From Octopus bimaculoides (lineage: Eukaryota), in the NCBI RefSeq assembly GCF_001194135.2, contig NC_068986.1, positions 106,992,738-107,025,163 on the forward strand: a stretch of 32,426 nucleotides of DNA, written 5' to 3'. Positions 217-24,798 of the stretch are shown in pieces (within the stretch, counting starts at the first letter, position 1; each line of letters starts with the position of its first letter). A model generated the notes under the pieces. The model saw only the letters and a list, made by a program, of their open reading frames with translations. It searched no databases and had not been told where the DNA came from. The translations under genes and the position numbers were made by a program.

Positions 217-289
217 ATGACACGACTATTTCCTGTTTGCGTGCTGCTTATGATTGTGATAACAGTAGTTATGACAGAATGCCCTAACG
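217..289 (+). CDS. Gene A coding exon 1: signal peptide of a secreted Cys-rich protein (MTRLFPVCVLLMIVITVVMTECPN)
   Basis: Acceptor tttgtactttcag ends at 210, ATG at 217, hydrophobic core VCVLLMIVITVV, phase-1 donor G|GTAAGT at 290. Clear homolog at 15868-15934. Confidence 0.88.
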
Positions 290-474
290 GTAAGTTACCA
301 ATCATATATCAAAATACTGAATAAATAAATTTTGAGCATTACTTGATCACCAATTCTTTTCCTCTATTCAGCTAATCAGTATTTTCATACTTTGAACGCA
401 TTACAATTGCCGGTATATGATTTCCATTGCCACGAATTGACAATTCGTATACACGTGTATGTAAATATGAATAT

Positions 475-552
475 ATATTTATATAGATAGATATATATAG
501 ATAGATAGATAGATAGATAGATAGATAGATAGATAGATAGATAGATAGATAG
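475..552. repeat. (TA)/(GATA)n microsatellite running into an N gap
   Basis: Read directly. Similar arrays: (CT)n 3369-3420 and 28120-28196; (TTA)n 4339-4440 and 13188-13240; (GATA)n 9583-9641; (CA)n 8410-8508, 11980-12025 and 15700-15766; (AAT)n 19146-19206; (AAAT)n 31587-31620. Confidence 0.97.
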
Positions 553-1029
553 NNNNNNNNNNNNNNNNNNNNNNNNNNNNNNNNNNNNNNNNNNNNNNNN
601 NNNNNNNNNNNNNNNNNNNNNNNNNNNNNNNNNNNNNNNNNNNNNNNNNNNNNNNNNNNNNNNNNNNNNNNNNNNNNNNNNNNNNNNNNNNNNNNNNNNN
701 NNNNNNNNNNNNNNNNNNNNNNNNNNNNNNNNNNNNNNNNNNNNNNNNNNNNNNNNNNNNNNNNNNNNNNNNNNNNNNNNNNNNNNNNNNNNNNNNNNNN
801 NNNNNNNNNNNNNNNNNNNNNNNNNNNNNNNNNNNNNNNNNNNNNNNNNNNNNNNNNNNNNNNNNNNNNNNNNNNNNNNNNNNNNNNNNNNNNNNNNNNN
901 NNNNNNNNNNNNNNNNNNNNNNNNNNNNNNNNNNNNNNNNNNNNNNNNNNNNNNNNNNNNNNNNNNNNNNNNNNNNNNNNNNNNNNNNNNNNNNNNNNNN
1001 NNNNNNNNNNNNNNNNNNNNNNNNNNNNN

Positions 1030-1420
1030 GGTCCCGGGTTCAGTCCCACTGCGTGGCACCTTGGGCAAGTGTCTTCTATAATAGCCTCGGGCCGACCAAA
1101 GCCTTGTGAGTGGATTTGGTAGACGGAAACTGAAAGAAGCCCGTCGTATATATGTATATATATATATGTATGTGTGTTTGTGTGTATGTGTTTGTGTGTA
1201 TGTGTTTGTGTGTCTGTGTTTGTCCCTCCGCCCAACATCGCTTGACAACCGATGTTGGTGTATTTATGTCCCCGTAACTTAGCGGTTCGGCAAAAAGAGA
1301 ACGATAGAATAAGTACTAGGCTTGTAAAGAAAAAGTCCTGGGGTCGATTTGCTCGACTAAAGGCGGTGCTCCAGCATGGCCACTGTCAAAAGATTGAAAC
1401 AAGTAAAAGAGTAAAAGAGT
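1030..1420 (+). mobile_element. tRNA/CORE-type SINE (octopus-like family); 5' end lost in gap
   Basis: B-box-like GGGTTCAGTCCC, CORE-like ACCTTGGGCAAGT, internal (TA)/(TG) tract, 3' end GGCGGTGCTCCAGCATGGCC...AAAAGAGTAAAAGAG; same family at 9045-9290 (-). Confidence 0.8.
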
Positions 1421-1689
1421 AAATATATATCTATATATGTATGGATATATATGTACAGTTCATGCAGGCATATATTATCCACACCAGAAGAGAGGGTTGA
1501 TTAAATACAGAAGAGACAGATACACGTACATGTCTACATATATACGTGTGTATATGCAAAATGTCCAATGATCAAGATAGCAAATTATTTTTATGCATAC
1601 ATGTAATGTACATACATATACATACATATATCGATTTATATGTGTGTATATATATATATACATATGCCCATTAATACCCAGCTATATAC

Positions 1690-3200
1690 GAGATAGCATG
1701 GACTTACTCAAGCATATCCTAACTACTGTCCTGGAAGGTATACTTGCAAGTTTTAATGTCATTAAAATCTATAACAACATACCTCATAGCTTGGGCCTGG
1801 AAGCAGTCGAACTGGGTAGAGAGACACAGAAGATGTATAGATGAACATTTCAGAACAGACTTCATTACCAAAGCTACACGTCTAGTACTAGAAGAAAACA
1901 CCTCCAGACTTAATAATAAGATATACCGACAGATAGAGGGCACGGCTACGAAATTTGCACCTTCATATGCCAACCTAGTCATGGGTTACCTAGAAGGTTA
2001 ACTTTACGAGTAAGTAGGAAAAATCTGTGATCAGAACGTCAAGGAAGACATCGTGAAGAAGTGGAAGCGCTACCTCGATGATTGTTTCATTTTTGGGGAT
2101 AGATTAAAAGACCATTTCACAACGACCTCCTCAACACACTGACCCATCTATCAAACTTACAAAAGTAACAACCTACAAGGAATTACCATTCCTAGACATT
2201 CACATCAAAATACACAACTCCACTGTTACAGCAGACATTTTACAAACAAACGGAGACACACCAATATTTGATTTTCTACTTTTGCCACCCCTCACATATT
2301 AAAAGGAACATTCCATACAATATGCAAGACGTATCTGCACCATAGCATTTGACCCACAAATATTCCAAATTAGACTTGATGAATACAAAAACATCCTACA
2401 AGAACAAAATTACCCTGTGAAACTAGTAAATAATAGATTGTCGAAAGCGACGACATTTGACATCACACAACTAGGGACTCCAAAAGAAAAAAAACAAGGA
2501 AAATGCTATTCCATTTATTAATACACACAACTCTGTAATAACCAATATTTTCCACGTAATACAAACCTACCGAATATTCTTAGAGAGTCCCAAAATGAGA
2601 AATTCTGATAGATAAAAGCTGCATATGAAATAGTAAACGCCTGAAAATTCCTTTAAAACAACTCACAGTGGCAAAATTCACATCAGTGAATGAAACAAAA
2701 TTCTCCGTAACAGAATGTGGAATATGCAACACGAACAACAACTTCAAATATATGTATGGGGACACCCACATAAAATTTAAGAGTGGATTGTCGTTCAACG
2801 TAAATGCAAATATGAGCTGCAAGGCACAAAATCTCATATACTGCGTTACTTCTCCCAAATGCAAAGAAAATTATATTGGTGAAACCAATAATTCCTTTTC
2901 CCAACGCACAAGAATCTACAGACACTAAATCTCGCAAGAAGAACTACGGAAAATTCCACTGAACAAACATATGGAAATATGTGGAGTAGTAAAATTCAAG
3001 ATCTTCCCCTTCTATAAATGCTCAAGGAACAACCCCAAATTCCAAAATGCAATGGAACTATATTTCAAAAACATACCTTTACACGGCTAAATCGAAAACA
3101 ACAACTGGAATTTTAATCAAAAACATCCATGCAAATATTCTCTTCTCCTTACATTAATCAATACAAAAGAAGAAGGCAAGACCTTGAAACGTAATTATAA
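1690..3200 (+). mobile_element. Degraded Penelope-like retroelement (RT + GIY-YIG endonuclease) in gene A intron 1
   Basis: YRQIEGTATKFAPSYANLVMGYLE (ORF 1744-2001), KWKRYLDDCFIF near 2059-2094, CKAQNLIYCVTSPKCKENYIGETNNSFSQR (ORF 2668-2928); multiple frameshifts and stops. Confidence 0.92.
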
Positions 3201-23300: not shown

Positions 23301-23657
23301 AACTAAAGTTAACTACAAAAAAAATAGATTCCAAAATGATTCAAAAATAGAATTCTCAAAAAGAAAAAAAAAATAGATTCCAAAATTTATCAATTATAAA
23401 ATATATTAAGAAGTGGATAGTACGTTTAAATATTTAAAGAATAAATATTTAGAATCATCAGAATTTAATATAATGTATAAATGATGCAGTAAAATGCTAA
23501 TTCTCTTGTACCAAATTAAAGTGGTCACATGTACTTAGCTTGCATACAAGATATGAAAACGATTGCCTTAATTTATTCCGATTTTAAGAATATGGACTCA
23601 ATATAAAAAAAAGTGAATAATAATTTACGCTAAATAAACATATATACCAGGATATCA

Positions 23658-24043
23658 GTGGAGACGCAATGGCCCAGTGGTTAGGGCAGCGGACTCGCGG
23701 TCATAGGATCGCGGTTTCGATTCCCAGACCGGGCGTTGTGAGTGTTTATTGAGCGAAAACACCTAAAGCTCCACAAGGCTCCGACTGGGAATAATGGTGA
23801 ACACTACTCTTTCACCACAACTTTCTCTCACTCTTACTTCCTGTTTCTGTTGTGCCTGTAATTCAAAGGGTCAGCATTGTCACACTGTGTCACGCTGAAT
23901 ATCCACGAGAACTACGTTAAGGGTACACGTGTCTGTGGAGTGCTCTACCACTAGCACGTTAATTTCACGAGCAGGCTGTTCCGTTGATCGGATCGACTGG
24001 AACCCTCGACGTCGTAAGCGACGGAGTGCCAACAACAACAACA
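23658..24043 (+). mobile_element. tRNA-derived SINE specific to gene B intron 2
   Basis: Box A TGGCCCAGTGG, box B GGTTTCGATTCC, (AAC)n tail; TSD-like ACCAG(G/C)ATATCA at 23646-23657 and 24044-24055; the site is empty in gene A near 7555. Confidence 0.85.
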
Positions 24044-24345
24044 ACCAGCATATCACTAACTGAAACAATGAGAGGGCAAAATAGTTAGCACGTCGGGCAT
24101 ATTCACTTATCGGAAATTCTTCTAGTTTTCTGATTAGAATTTAAATTTCTCCGTAGTCGAGTTTGCATTCGATCCCTTCCAGATTGATAATATAAGTACC
24201 AGTTAAACATTAGAGTCATTGTAATCGACTTACCCGTTGCATGAAATTGCTGACCCTTTTCCAAATTCTTAGACCAGTGTAGGCATAATTATGTCATAGA
24301 AATAGTTTTCATAGAATAATTAATATATTTTCTTATCAACAACAG

Positions 24346-24496
24346 ATTGTAAGTGGGATGATGGCGGATGTGTTGCTAGAAGCACAAAATGGACTGTCAT
24401 CAGGGAGGACGGGGTTTGCTGGATTTACACCTGCAACTATAAAGAAATGACAGACGTTAAAGCCGAAAAGAAATTTCTCGGAAAATGTTTACCTCC
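24346..24496 (+). CDS. Gene B coding exon 3: Cys-rich module 2 (YCKWDDGGCVARSTKWTVIREDGVCWIYTCNYKEMTDVKAEKKFLGKCLP)
   Basis: Acceptor tcttatcaacaacag ends at 24345; 151-bp open exon, phase 1 in and phase 2 out; donor CC|GTGAGT at 24497. Confidence 0.88.
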
Positions 24497-24713
24497 GTGA
24501 GTATATATTTGAAGCTATTTAATTTACTTCTTATATTACATTTTCTCAATATCATCGTTGCGTTGTCTTTGTAACAACATTTCCTCTTCTGTTCTAAATT
24601 TAGCTCAAACTTAGAAGTGAAAATACAAATCTGAGCATTTCGAGTTGAAAATGTATACTGTTAAAATTCCTTTTTTTTTAAATTTAAAATGTGCTTGTCT
24701 CTTTGTTTTTCAG

Positions 24714-24798
24714 AGAAGCCCATATCACACTGCTTACTATTTCTCAAGTAGAGCATGACAGCGGCCATACTTTCAACATACAGGATATTCCATTATAG
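24714..24798 (+). CDS. Gene B coding exon 4: Cys-free C-terminal tail (PEAHITLLTISQVEHDSGHTFNIQDIPL*)
   Basis: Acceptor ctttgtttttcag ends at 24713; in-frame after the phase-2 junction; TAG at 24796-24798. Spliced CDS 67+135+151+85 = 438 nt = 145 aa + stop. Confidence 0.75.

Follow-up and report, generated by a model that had tools for sequence, protein, structure and literature searches.

Does a stretch of octopus chromosome that holds two look-alike sets of short, widely spaced reading frames contain working genes, and if so, what kind of protein do they make? The stretch in question (hereafter the window, meaning all 32,426 nucleotides (nt) that were analysed) comes from Octopus bimaculoides, where its two plus-strand genes, A and B, lie at ~107.0 Mb on chromosome CM046606.1 of assembly GCA_001194135.2. 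From the sequence alone, they had been proposed to be a tandem pair of cryptic genes for a secreted ten-cysteine protein family that could not be assigned. Our data show that both are real, spliced genes whose transcripts are extremely abundant and narrowly expressed. They belong to a gene cluster found only in Octopus, and we consider it probable that its members are bulk-secreted, disulfide-locked binding proteins, similar in fold to the FnI finger modules of fibronectin and subject to diversifying selection.

Transcription and corrected gene models

Transcription was assessed in public sequencing runs of O. bimaculoides, through an index listing and through direct read depth. Among the indexed RNA runs, only X14, a run released in 2022, contains exon 3 of genes A and B. 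Word depth in X14 is ~6,000-18,000 on the exons of gene A and ~100,000-170,000 on those of gene B; introns lie ~2,000x lower (~5 in gene A, ~50 in gene B), and depth is zero past the poly(A) site of gene B. Since this intron signal scales with the exon signal and ends at the poly(A) site, it represents RNA, with unspliced pre-mRNA in the introns, rather than contaminating DNA. Run X12, a candidate second expressing run, was rejected: its introns are covered evenly, at a depth of ~10-25, as expected of DNA. Direct read depth on the A and B exons tested was nil in X18, X19, X24 and X27-X38, as it was in X20, a run of unspecified kind. The ATG exon of gene B had no depth in X31-X33, and X39 and X40, which come from the same study as X14, are not indexed as containing the exons; with 14 RNA runs scored by direct depth, they bring the negative RNA runs to 16.

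The coding exons that the original prediction had placed at 217-289, 4833-4967 and 7865-8012 in gene A, and at 15868-15934, 19641-19775 and 24346-24496 in gene B, have the lengths, GT/AG splice sites, phases and translations that it gave them, and the spliced joints 289>4833, 4967>7865 and 19775>24346 are all present in X14 RNA. At the first of these joints, the loose end that follows 289 matches the beginning of the 4833 exon; the second is flanked by GT..AG and carried by two contigs at depth 5988, with an exon word depth of ~5,800-9,900; the third is likewise flanked by GT..AG, and the loose end that precedes 24346 reads the final bases of the 19641..19775 exon. The predicted terminal exons (8236 onward in gene A and 24714-24798 in gene B), however, have intron-level depth, and the transcripts instead use the joints 8012>10822, 24496>25454 and 25563>26205. 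X14 depth at 8102-8353 is 0-16, versus ~17,800 on the gene A exon, and the sequence from 8236 onward falls within a block of intron homology that pairs 7564-8249 with 24046-24727 in gene B. Beyond 8012, the loose end in X14 agrees with the sequence at 10822 at 27/30 bases, and block 10711-11143, which spans this last exon, aligns with 26093-26482 in gene B. In gene B, the loose end after 24496 reads CAAGTGATTGAGGACACTCAG..., matching 25455 onward, and the final joint, 25563>26205, is flanked by GT..AG at depth 21,649. The tail exon of gene B (Table 1) has no counterpart in the gene A transcript. Assembly gaps do not disturb these models: 6/6 gaps in the window are intronic or intergenic and the exons are gap-free, and since transcripts connect the exons flanking gaps 553-1029, 8509-8626, 10354-10363 and 23083-23092, exon order and reading frame are secure. 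Further gaps lie at 14202-14301 and 15079-15627.

Both transcripts extend upstream of the exon that carries the start codon. In gene A, this exon opens at a splice acceptor, and the X14 loose end before position 211 reads TTTCTTCACAGCTTTTTCCTTTTGGTATAC; an upstream 5' untranslated exon must therefore lie beyond the window. Gene B also opens at a splice acceptor (15862), so a non-coding exon must precede it as well. No match to the end of the gene A 5' exon was found upstream of gene B in the readable window sequence, and the corresponding exon of gene B may lie in the gap at 15079-15627.

The corrected models bear differently on the two predicted proteins. The predicted end of protein A stood, with its stop in exon 3, while protein B, at 129 amino acids, ends in ...GKCLPPQVIEDTQNKTA rather than in ...EAHITLLTISQVEHDSGHTFNIQDIPL. 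Protein B is identical to XP_052825017.1, annotated as "uncharacterized protein LOC128248175" of O. bimaculoides, and this 100% identity, together with a chromosomal locus that itself matches window positions 5868-32426 at 100% and has the same gaps, bears out the suspected octopus source of the DNA. Gene B, having a RefSeq model, was therefore never cryptic. For gene A, on the other hand, a word-indexed search of a protein database of 5.8 billion clusters returned no counterpart, not even shared 5-residue words; it is a previously unannotated expressed gene.

Read in frame past its TAA into the exon at 10822, gene A yields KTDLPIGNRSQSQTSLL, which by tblastn has 72% identity to the C-terminal tail of the paralogue P0002 (LOC128248056); given this readable relic, gene A has lost its C-terminal tail to a stop codon that immediately follows its final cysteine. 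After the signal peptide, protein A contains 13 cysteines, namely the ten shared ones and three extra (in ECPNEC, GCC and RVCG), and with this odd total one thiol may stay free or bond to another molecule.

Table 1. Exons of genes A and B and of their neighbour C in window coordinates, with the terminal exons that the RNA did not bear out
Feature	Position	Strand	Details
Gene A, ATG exon	211..289	+	Coding sequence starts at 217; signal peptide to ...ECPN(E); X14 coverage from 211
Gene A, module 1 exon	4833..4967	+	135 nt, phase 1 at both ends; C-x2-C-x5-C-x6-W-x7-C-x4-C
Gene A, module 2 exon	7865..8012	+	TAA at 8005-8007 immediately after the tenth framework cysteine; X14 depth ~17,800
Gene A, terminal exon as originally predicted	8236..8300 (only start given; end nominal)	+	Unused; intron sequence common to the gene B intron
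Gene A, last exon, 3' untranslated	10822..10985 (end approximate)	+	AATAAA at 10963; homologous to the gene B last exon
Gene B, ATG exon	15862..15934	+	Coding sequence starts at 15868; opens at splice acceptor; X14 depth up to ~170,000
Gene B, module 1 exon	19641..19775	+	135 nt; X14 depth ~100,000
Gene B, module 2 exon	24346..24496	+	151 nt; X14 depth ~127,000
Gene B, terminal exon as originally predicted	24714..24798	+	Unused; X14 depth ~59-62, equal to surrounding intron, versus ~127,000 on exons
Gene B, tail exon	25454..25563	+	Encodes (P)QVIEDTQNKTA, stop at 25488-25490, then 3' untranslated sequence
Gene B, last exon, 3' untranslated	26205..26317	+	Poly(A) addition at 26317: A18 loose end in X14, depth 0 downstream
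Gene C, homologue of 5' untranslated exon	32050..32151 (start uncertain)	+	GTAAGT donor at 32152

A protein family restricted to Octopus

A HMMER profile built from gene B and the gene A exon translations, searched against 1.84 billion representative proteins, recovered only Octopus proteins, bar two low-complexity repeat proteins (P0007 and P0008) that are false positives and not relatives. As far as present protein databases go, the family thus occurs in Octopus alone, in agreement with the original suggestion of a lineage-specific family. The relatives are LOC128248056, LOC128248057, LOC128248060, LOC106872088 and A0A0L8IDP9 in O. bimaculoides and LOC115212787, LOC118763691 and LOC118763783 in O. 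sinensis, all of them "uncharacterized". Genes A and B are indeed neighbours, with gene B at 107,008,605-107,018,227 on CM046606.1, but they are not an isolated pair: the O. bimaculoides cluster comprises at least seven genes over at least 270 kb, its located members lying at 107.01, 107.13-107.16 and 107.26 Mb of one chromosome, one of them on the opposite strand. The cluster is also present in O. sinensis, where two of the genes map to 9.85 and 10.37 Mb on a chromosome of 120 Mb; a third gene maps to 96.9 Mb.

Family members share both gene architecture and protein framework. A signal-peptide exon with a phase-1 donor is followed by a first module exon of ~135-150 nt, a second of ~148-160 nt, and one or more tail or untranslated exons; this layout was found in A, B, P0003 of O. 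bimaculoides and P0004 of O. sinensis. The ten-cysteine framework first noted in A and B extends to the family as C-x2-C-x5-C-x14-C-x4-C-x15..19-C-x6-C-x14..16-C-x4-C-x17-C, following a signal peptide of MT(R/Q)LFP type, and as a regular expression it fits 9/9 full-length members. All ten cysteines are invariant in an 8-member alignment, as are G26, W40, E42 and W93. Secretion, which had also been proposed, is consistent with the hydrophobic, signal-peptide-type N-terminus that a hydropathy heuristic finds conserved in every member. The cores have masses of 10.2-11.0 kDa and isoelectric points (pI) of 4.9-9.3, mostly 8.4-9.3, with B at 5.2 and P0004 at 4.9, and the C-terminal tails often contain KR, KKRR or RR motifs, putatively convertase cleavage sites.

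The core itself appears to be built from two similar units. Exons 2 and 3 each encode C-x5/6-C-x6-W-x7/8-C-x4-C, and in hhalign comparisons the two halves superpose in the expected register, though weakly (P = 0.009). In the literature library searched, no paper mentioned the family by its LOC, XP or UniProt identifiers or by its peptide motifs, and the supplement of a Paroctopus salivary-gland paper contains none of the family identifiers. Gene B and most of the paralogues were already known as unnamed database entries, whereas the corrected, RNA-verified models, gene A, the size of the cluster, the two-module repeat, the predicted FnI-like fold and the greater divergence of exons than of introns are new.

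Divergence of genes A and B

The two genes are colinear duplicates (aligned blocks 4355-5387 with 19143-20214, 7459-8249 with 23545-24727, and 10711-11684 with 26093-27126), and they differ more in their coding exons than in the introns around them. Identity between A and B is 55.6% and 58.8% in the two main coding exons, compared with 76-81% over ~1,500 aligned flanking intron positions (odds ratio 2.7, Fisher p = 9e-13). Nei-Gojobori estimates for the mature region give 0.69 for non-synonymous divergence (dN) and 0.48 for synonymous divergence (dS), with an intron divergence K of 0.22-0.28, so that non-synonymous change is ~2.7x intron change (p = 2e-12). Amid this rapid change of the mature protein, the scaffold of ten cysteines stays constant. 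Exons that outpace introns are a known pattern in toxin and reproductive gene families, and the original description of the proteins as effectors fits this pattern together with the extreme expression in one run and the tandem array.

Predicted fold and comparison with known families

Sequence comparison left the family unassigned, as had been stated. Neither A nor B matched any Pfam family at E <= 10, and profiles of two and of eight members, searched against PDB sequences, gave chance matches or none. Predicted structure, in contrast, points to a tandem FnI-like fold. The usable AlphaFold2 model was built from a 9-row alignment, all Octopus; a 3-row alignment gave a predicted local distance difference test (pLDDT) score of 43 and was discarded. 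The model has a mean pLDDT of 80.4, reaching ~90 or more in the greater part of the core, and is all-beta, its strands falling into a two-plus-three arrangement (27-28, 33-34, 39-44, 47-56 and 59-70) that is repeated once (76-77, 82-86, 91-99 and 105-114). In a Foldseek search of the PDB, the ten best matches were 10/10 pairs of FnI modules, namely 2-3, 4-5 and 8-9FnI, in one case as part of a longer fragment; the FnI matches had probabilities of 0.95-1.00, E-values of 0.013-0.15 and target-normalised template modelling (TM) scores mostly of 0.44-0.55. Against viral structures, Foldseek returned nothing meaningful. The family core is therefore predicted to take the shape of two FnI modules in tandem, in which an A-B hairpin packs on a three-stranded C-D-E sheet and the two modules stand in a row, while membership of the octopus proteins in the FnI family is not established.

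Compared in detail with FnI pairs such as fibronectin 2-3, 4-5 and 8-9FnI or with the tPA finger, the octopus model is alike in having two modules of ~45 residues, each with a two-stranded and a three-stranded antiparallel sheet, in carrying an aromatic residue (Trp) at the start of strand C, and in being a disulfide-locked, extracellular protein by prediction. However, strand D of the octopus model holds C-x4-C where FnI has C-x-C, each octopus exon encodes five cysteines rather than the four of an FnI module, the octopus D-E hairpin is longer, and sequence similarity is not significant. The octopus protein also stands alone at ~10 kDa, whereas FnI occurs as a module in large mosaic proteins, and FnI is regarded as a chordate domain, while the octopus is a protostome.

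VWC/chordin-like domains and the arthropod SVWC proteins (Vago) are likewise small, secreted, beta-rich and, in the case of VWC, ten-cysteine domains, and the N-terminal subdomain of VWC is itself FnI-like. One of ten members (P0010, residues 29-94) gave the best VWC (PF00093) match, at 14.5 bits and E = 0.044, versus a cut-off of 27.6 bits; no other Pfam match in the family was notable. The octopus core nevertheless measures ~92 residues rather than ~60-70, SVWC has eight cysteines, and the SVWC Pfam model matched none of the members tested. Membership in VWC or SVWC was rejected on this sub-cut-off score and on the absence of the CxxCxC and CCxxC motifs (0/10 members), in keeping with the mismatch to SVWC spacing noted originally. 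The FnI cysteine pattern used here was validated on human modules.

Beta-microseminoprotein (MSMB/PSP94, with the squid beta-MSP-like contact pheromone) is similar in being a ~10-kDa, secreted, ten-cysteine, gland-made protein with two small beta-sheet domains and fast evolution, and by this analogy the octopus family may share its biological arena. Its cysteine spacing is different, as the original prediction had stated, and membership (PF05825) was rejected: a comparison of the family profile with human MSMB (verified against 3ix0) gave P = 0.75 in hhalign, no member matched the Pfam PSP94 model, and none of the MSMB entries 3ix0, 2iz3, 1xhh, 2iz4, 6rwc and 6imf was among the top 50 Foldseek matches.

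Possible functions and alternative explanations

The preferred reading of these data can be put as a sequence of steps. The predicted protein consists of a signal peptide (MTRLFPFCLL...), a ~10.5-kDa core whose ten cysteines would form five disulfides, presumably two inside each module and one clasp from N to C, and in several paralogues a dibasic tail. We infer that one specialised secretory tissue makes and releases such proteins in bulk, that in the extracellular space they would serve as binding modules locked by disulfides, and that these modules would use the exposed edge of a beta sheet to hold an extended partner by strand addition, as FnI fingers do. A fast-changing partner would then favour duplication time and again and place the mature part under diversifying selection, with the signal peptide and cysteines held fixed.

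Several observations weigh against this reading. The fold is a prediction from a shallow, 9-row, all-Octopus alignment, the Foldseek E-values are ~1e-2 and TM-scores lie near 0.5. Pfam fn1 (PF00039) had no match at E <= 10 in A, B or the eight paralogues tested, and the FnI signature C-x(6,8)-[LFY]-x(5)-[FYW]-x-[RK]-x(8,10)-C-x-C-x(6,9)-C was found in 0/10 members, versus 5/5 PDB-verified human fibronectin modules. When each octopus half was compared by hhalign with an alignment of fibronectin 1-5FnI (PDB-verified sequence), W fell on W and the register fitted the fold, which speaks for the reading, but at a weak P of 0.026-0.028. Secretion is read from a hydropathy heuristic. With regard to selection, dN/dS is 1.4 and not significantly above 1 (Fisher p = 0.28), and the contrast between exons and introns could arise in part from gene conversion, which would homogenise introns, or from constraint on the introns.

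Within this preferred reading, the arena of action could be reproduction or chemical communication, with the proteins serving as sperm attractants, gamete-recognition factors or contact pheromones of the oviducal gland, spermatophoric gland or egg coat, in the manner of the squid beta-MSP-like pheromone. We regard this as possible but on balance unlikely. Reproductive proteins typically show the evolutionary pattern seen here, and a secreted, fast-evolving, ten-cysteine protein of ~10-11 kDa encoded in a tandem array would suit such a role; furthermore, a single positive indexed RNA run suggests a rarely sampled organ, sex or stage. However, the comparisons with beta-microseminoprotein revealed no homology, and nothing links X14 to sex or maturity. 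Prey-directed venom or salivary toxins of the anterior or posterior salivary gland are a less likely alternative. Conotoxin and snake-venom phospholipase A2 genes are classical examples of tandem duplicates with a conserved signal peptide, a fixed cysteine scaffold, a hypervariable mature region and exons more divergent than introns, all of which recur in the octopus family, and extreme abundance in one sample would be in line with a toxin. Yet the folds are unrelated, and the searches turned up nothing that resembles the known toxin families of cephalopods. No 2015 run is indexed as containing the exons, and X34-X38 had zero depth at the exons tested; this bears on the posterior salivary gland only indirectly, through the transcriptome set of the 2015 genome paper, which reportedly included that gland.

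An immune role, whether as antimicrobial or pattern-binding effectors or as a cytokine-like, single-VWC "Vago-like" signal induced in one condition, seems to us more doubtful again. The VWC match of one paralogue, the basic pI of most cores and the fast evolution, which fits host-pathogen conflict, are in its favour, and appearance in one run could reflect induction rather than tissue. That match, however, is far under the cut-off, confined to one member and unaccompanied by the VWC motifs, B and P0004 have acidic cores, and nothing indicates that X14 came from an infected or challenged animal. Alternatively, the proteins may be structural or adhesive secretions (mucus, egg-stalk cement, cuticle or other matrix) in which finger-like modules cross-link polymers, a reading that we hold to be improbable and place below the immune one. 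Fibronectin FnI modules bind collagen and fibrin, and the top Foldseek matches include the 8-9FnI-collagen complex; very high abundance is as expected of bulk material, and the odd cysteine count of protein A could permit intermolecular disulfides. Matrix proteins, though, are usually larger, repetitive and conserved, whereas this family is free of low-complexity and repeat regions and varies widely in pI. Least likely by far is that the genes are non-functional transcribed duplicates, annotation noise or chance open reading frames (ORFs). Public protein sets lack gene A, and a third neighbour, gene C, is without RNA support, but canonical splicing, enormous abundance, intact frames and the retention of ten cysteines and exon phases in at least ten genes of two species effectively refute this reading for A and B.

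Going beyond the preferred reading of secreted, FnI-like binding proteins, the family could be a true protostome relative of the finger fold shared by FnI and the VWC subdomain, or its independent re-invention, deployed as a free-standing, diversifying ligand that is the dominant product of a gland or stage missed by atlases, for example a reproductive or chemosignalling one. We consider this more speculative proposal unlikely, less so than a venom role and more so than a reproductive arena as such. If it were true, the origin of finger modules would move outside the chordates, and the proteins would constitute a new class of octopus extracellular effectors; confirmation of an FnI-like fold would in itself bear on the supposed limitation of finger modules to chordates. 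Cephalopod genomes contain many lineage-specific genes of uncertain role, and the present family offers a concrete example in the form of a whole tandem cluster of abundant, predicted secreted proteins with corrected models. With the expressing tissue identified, a part in venom, reproduction, immunity or adhesion could be put to a direct test.

A third neighbouring gene and other features of the locus

A third member of the cluster, gene C, begins near the end of the window. Window positions 32122-32151 agree at 27/30 bases with the RNA-derived 3' end of the gene A 5' exon, and an intact ATG exon, MTRLFPFCLLIWATLKVHMTVADK, with a phase-1 donor follows at ~35281-35355 in window numbering, ~3.1 kb past the window end. 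Expression of gene C had no RNA support in the runs checked. Short X14 contigs (31-51 nt, depth ~17,000-18,000) cover only 32050-32099, with 1-2 mismatches, and depth is zero at 32100-32160, so expression of the gene C 5' exon in X14 was rejected. The most likely source of these contigs is a paralogue with a near-identical 5' untranslated exon; it may be gene A, for which that exon falls beyond the window.

The remaining features lie in introns and between genes. An Rfam scan of the window returned 0 RNA families, and the intronic or intergenic ORFs 9922-10353, 12303-12638, 17291-17746 and 9787-10131 have no Pfam match. The ORFs at 9922-10455 (+) and 12303-12638 (+) contain WPPNSP... and a helix-turn-helix-like stretch and bear some resemblance to pieces of mariner/Tc1-type transposases, though they have no Pfam match at E <= 10. 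Two 10-N gaps are bordered by near-identical direct duplicates, of 152 bp (10202-10353 and 10364-10515) and 39 bp (23044-23082 and 23093-23131), which suggests that they are overlapping contig ends left unmerged rather than missing sequence; both gaps are intronic. Very high depth was seen in all RNA and DNA runs tested, including those negative for the genes, at 5960-6085, 6590-6841, 8354-8450, 15700-15770, 20622-20995, 23614-24174, 28040-28284 and 31470-31714; these stretches are intronic and flanking interspersed repeats and microsatellites, whose signal has nothing to do with genes A and B. Finally, the last intron of gene A contains an interstitial telomere-like repeat at 9107-9187, where ~14 copies of ACCCTA correspond to (TTAGGG)n on the opposite strand.

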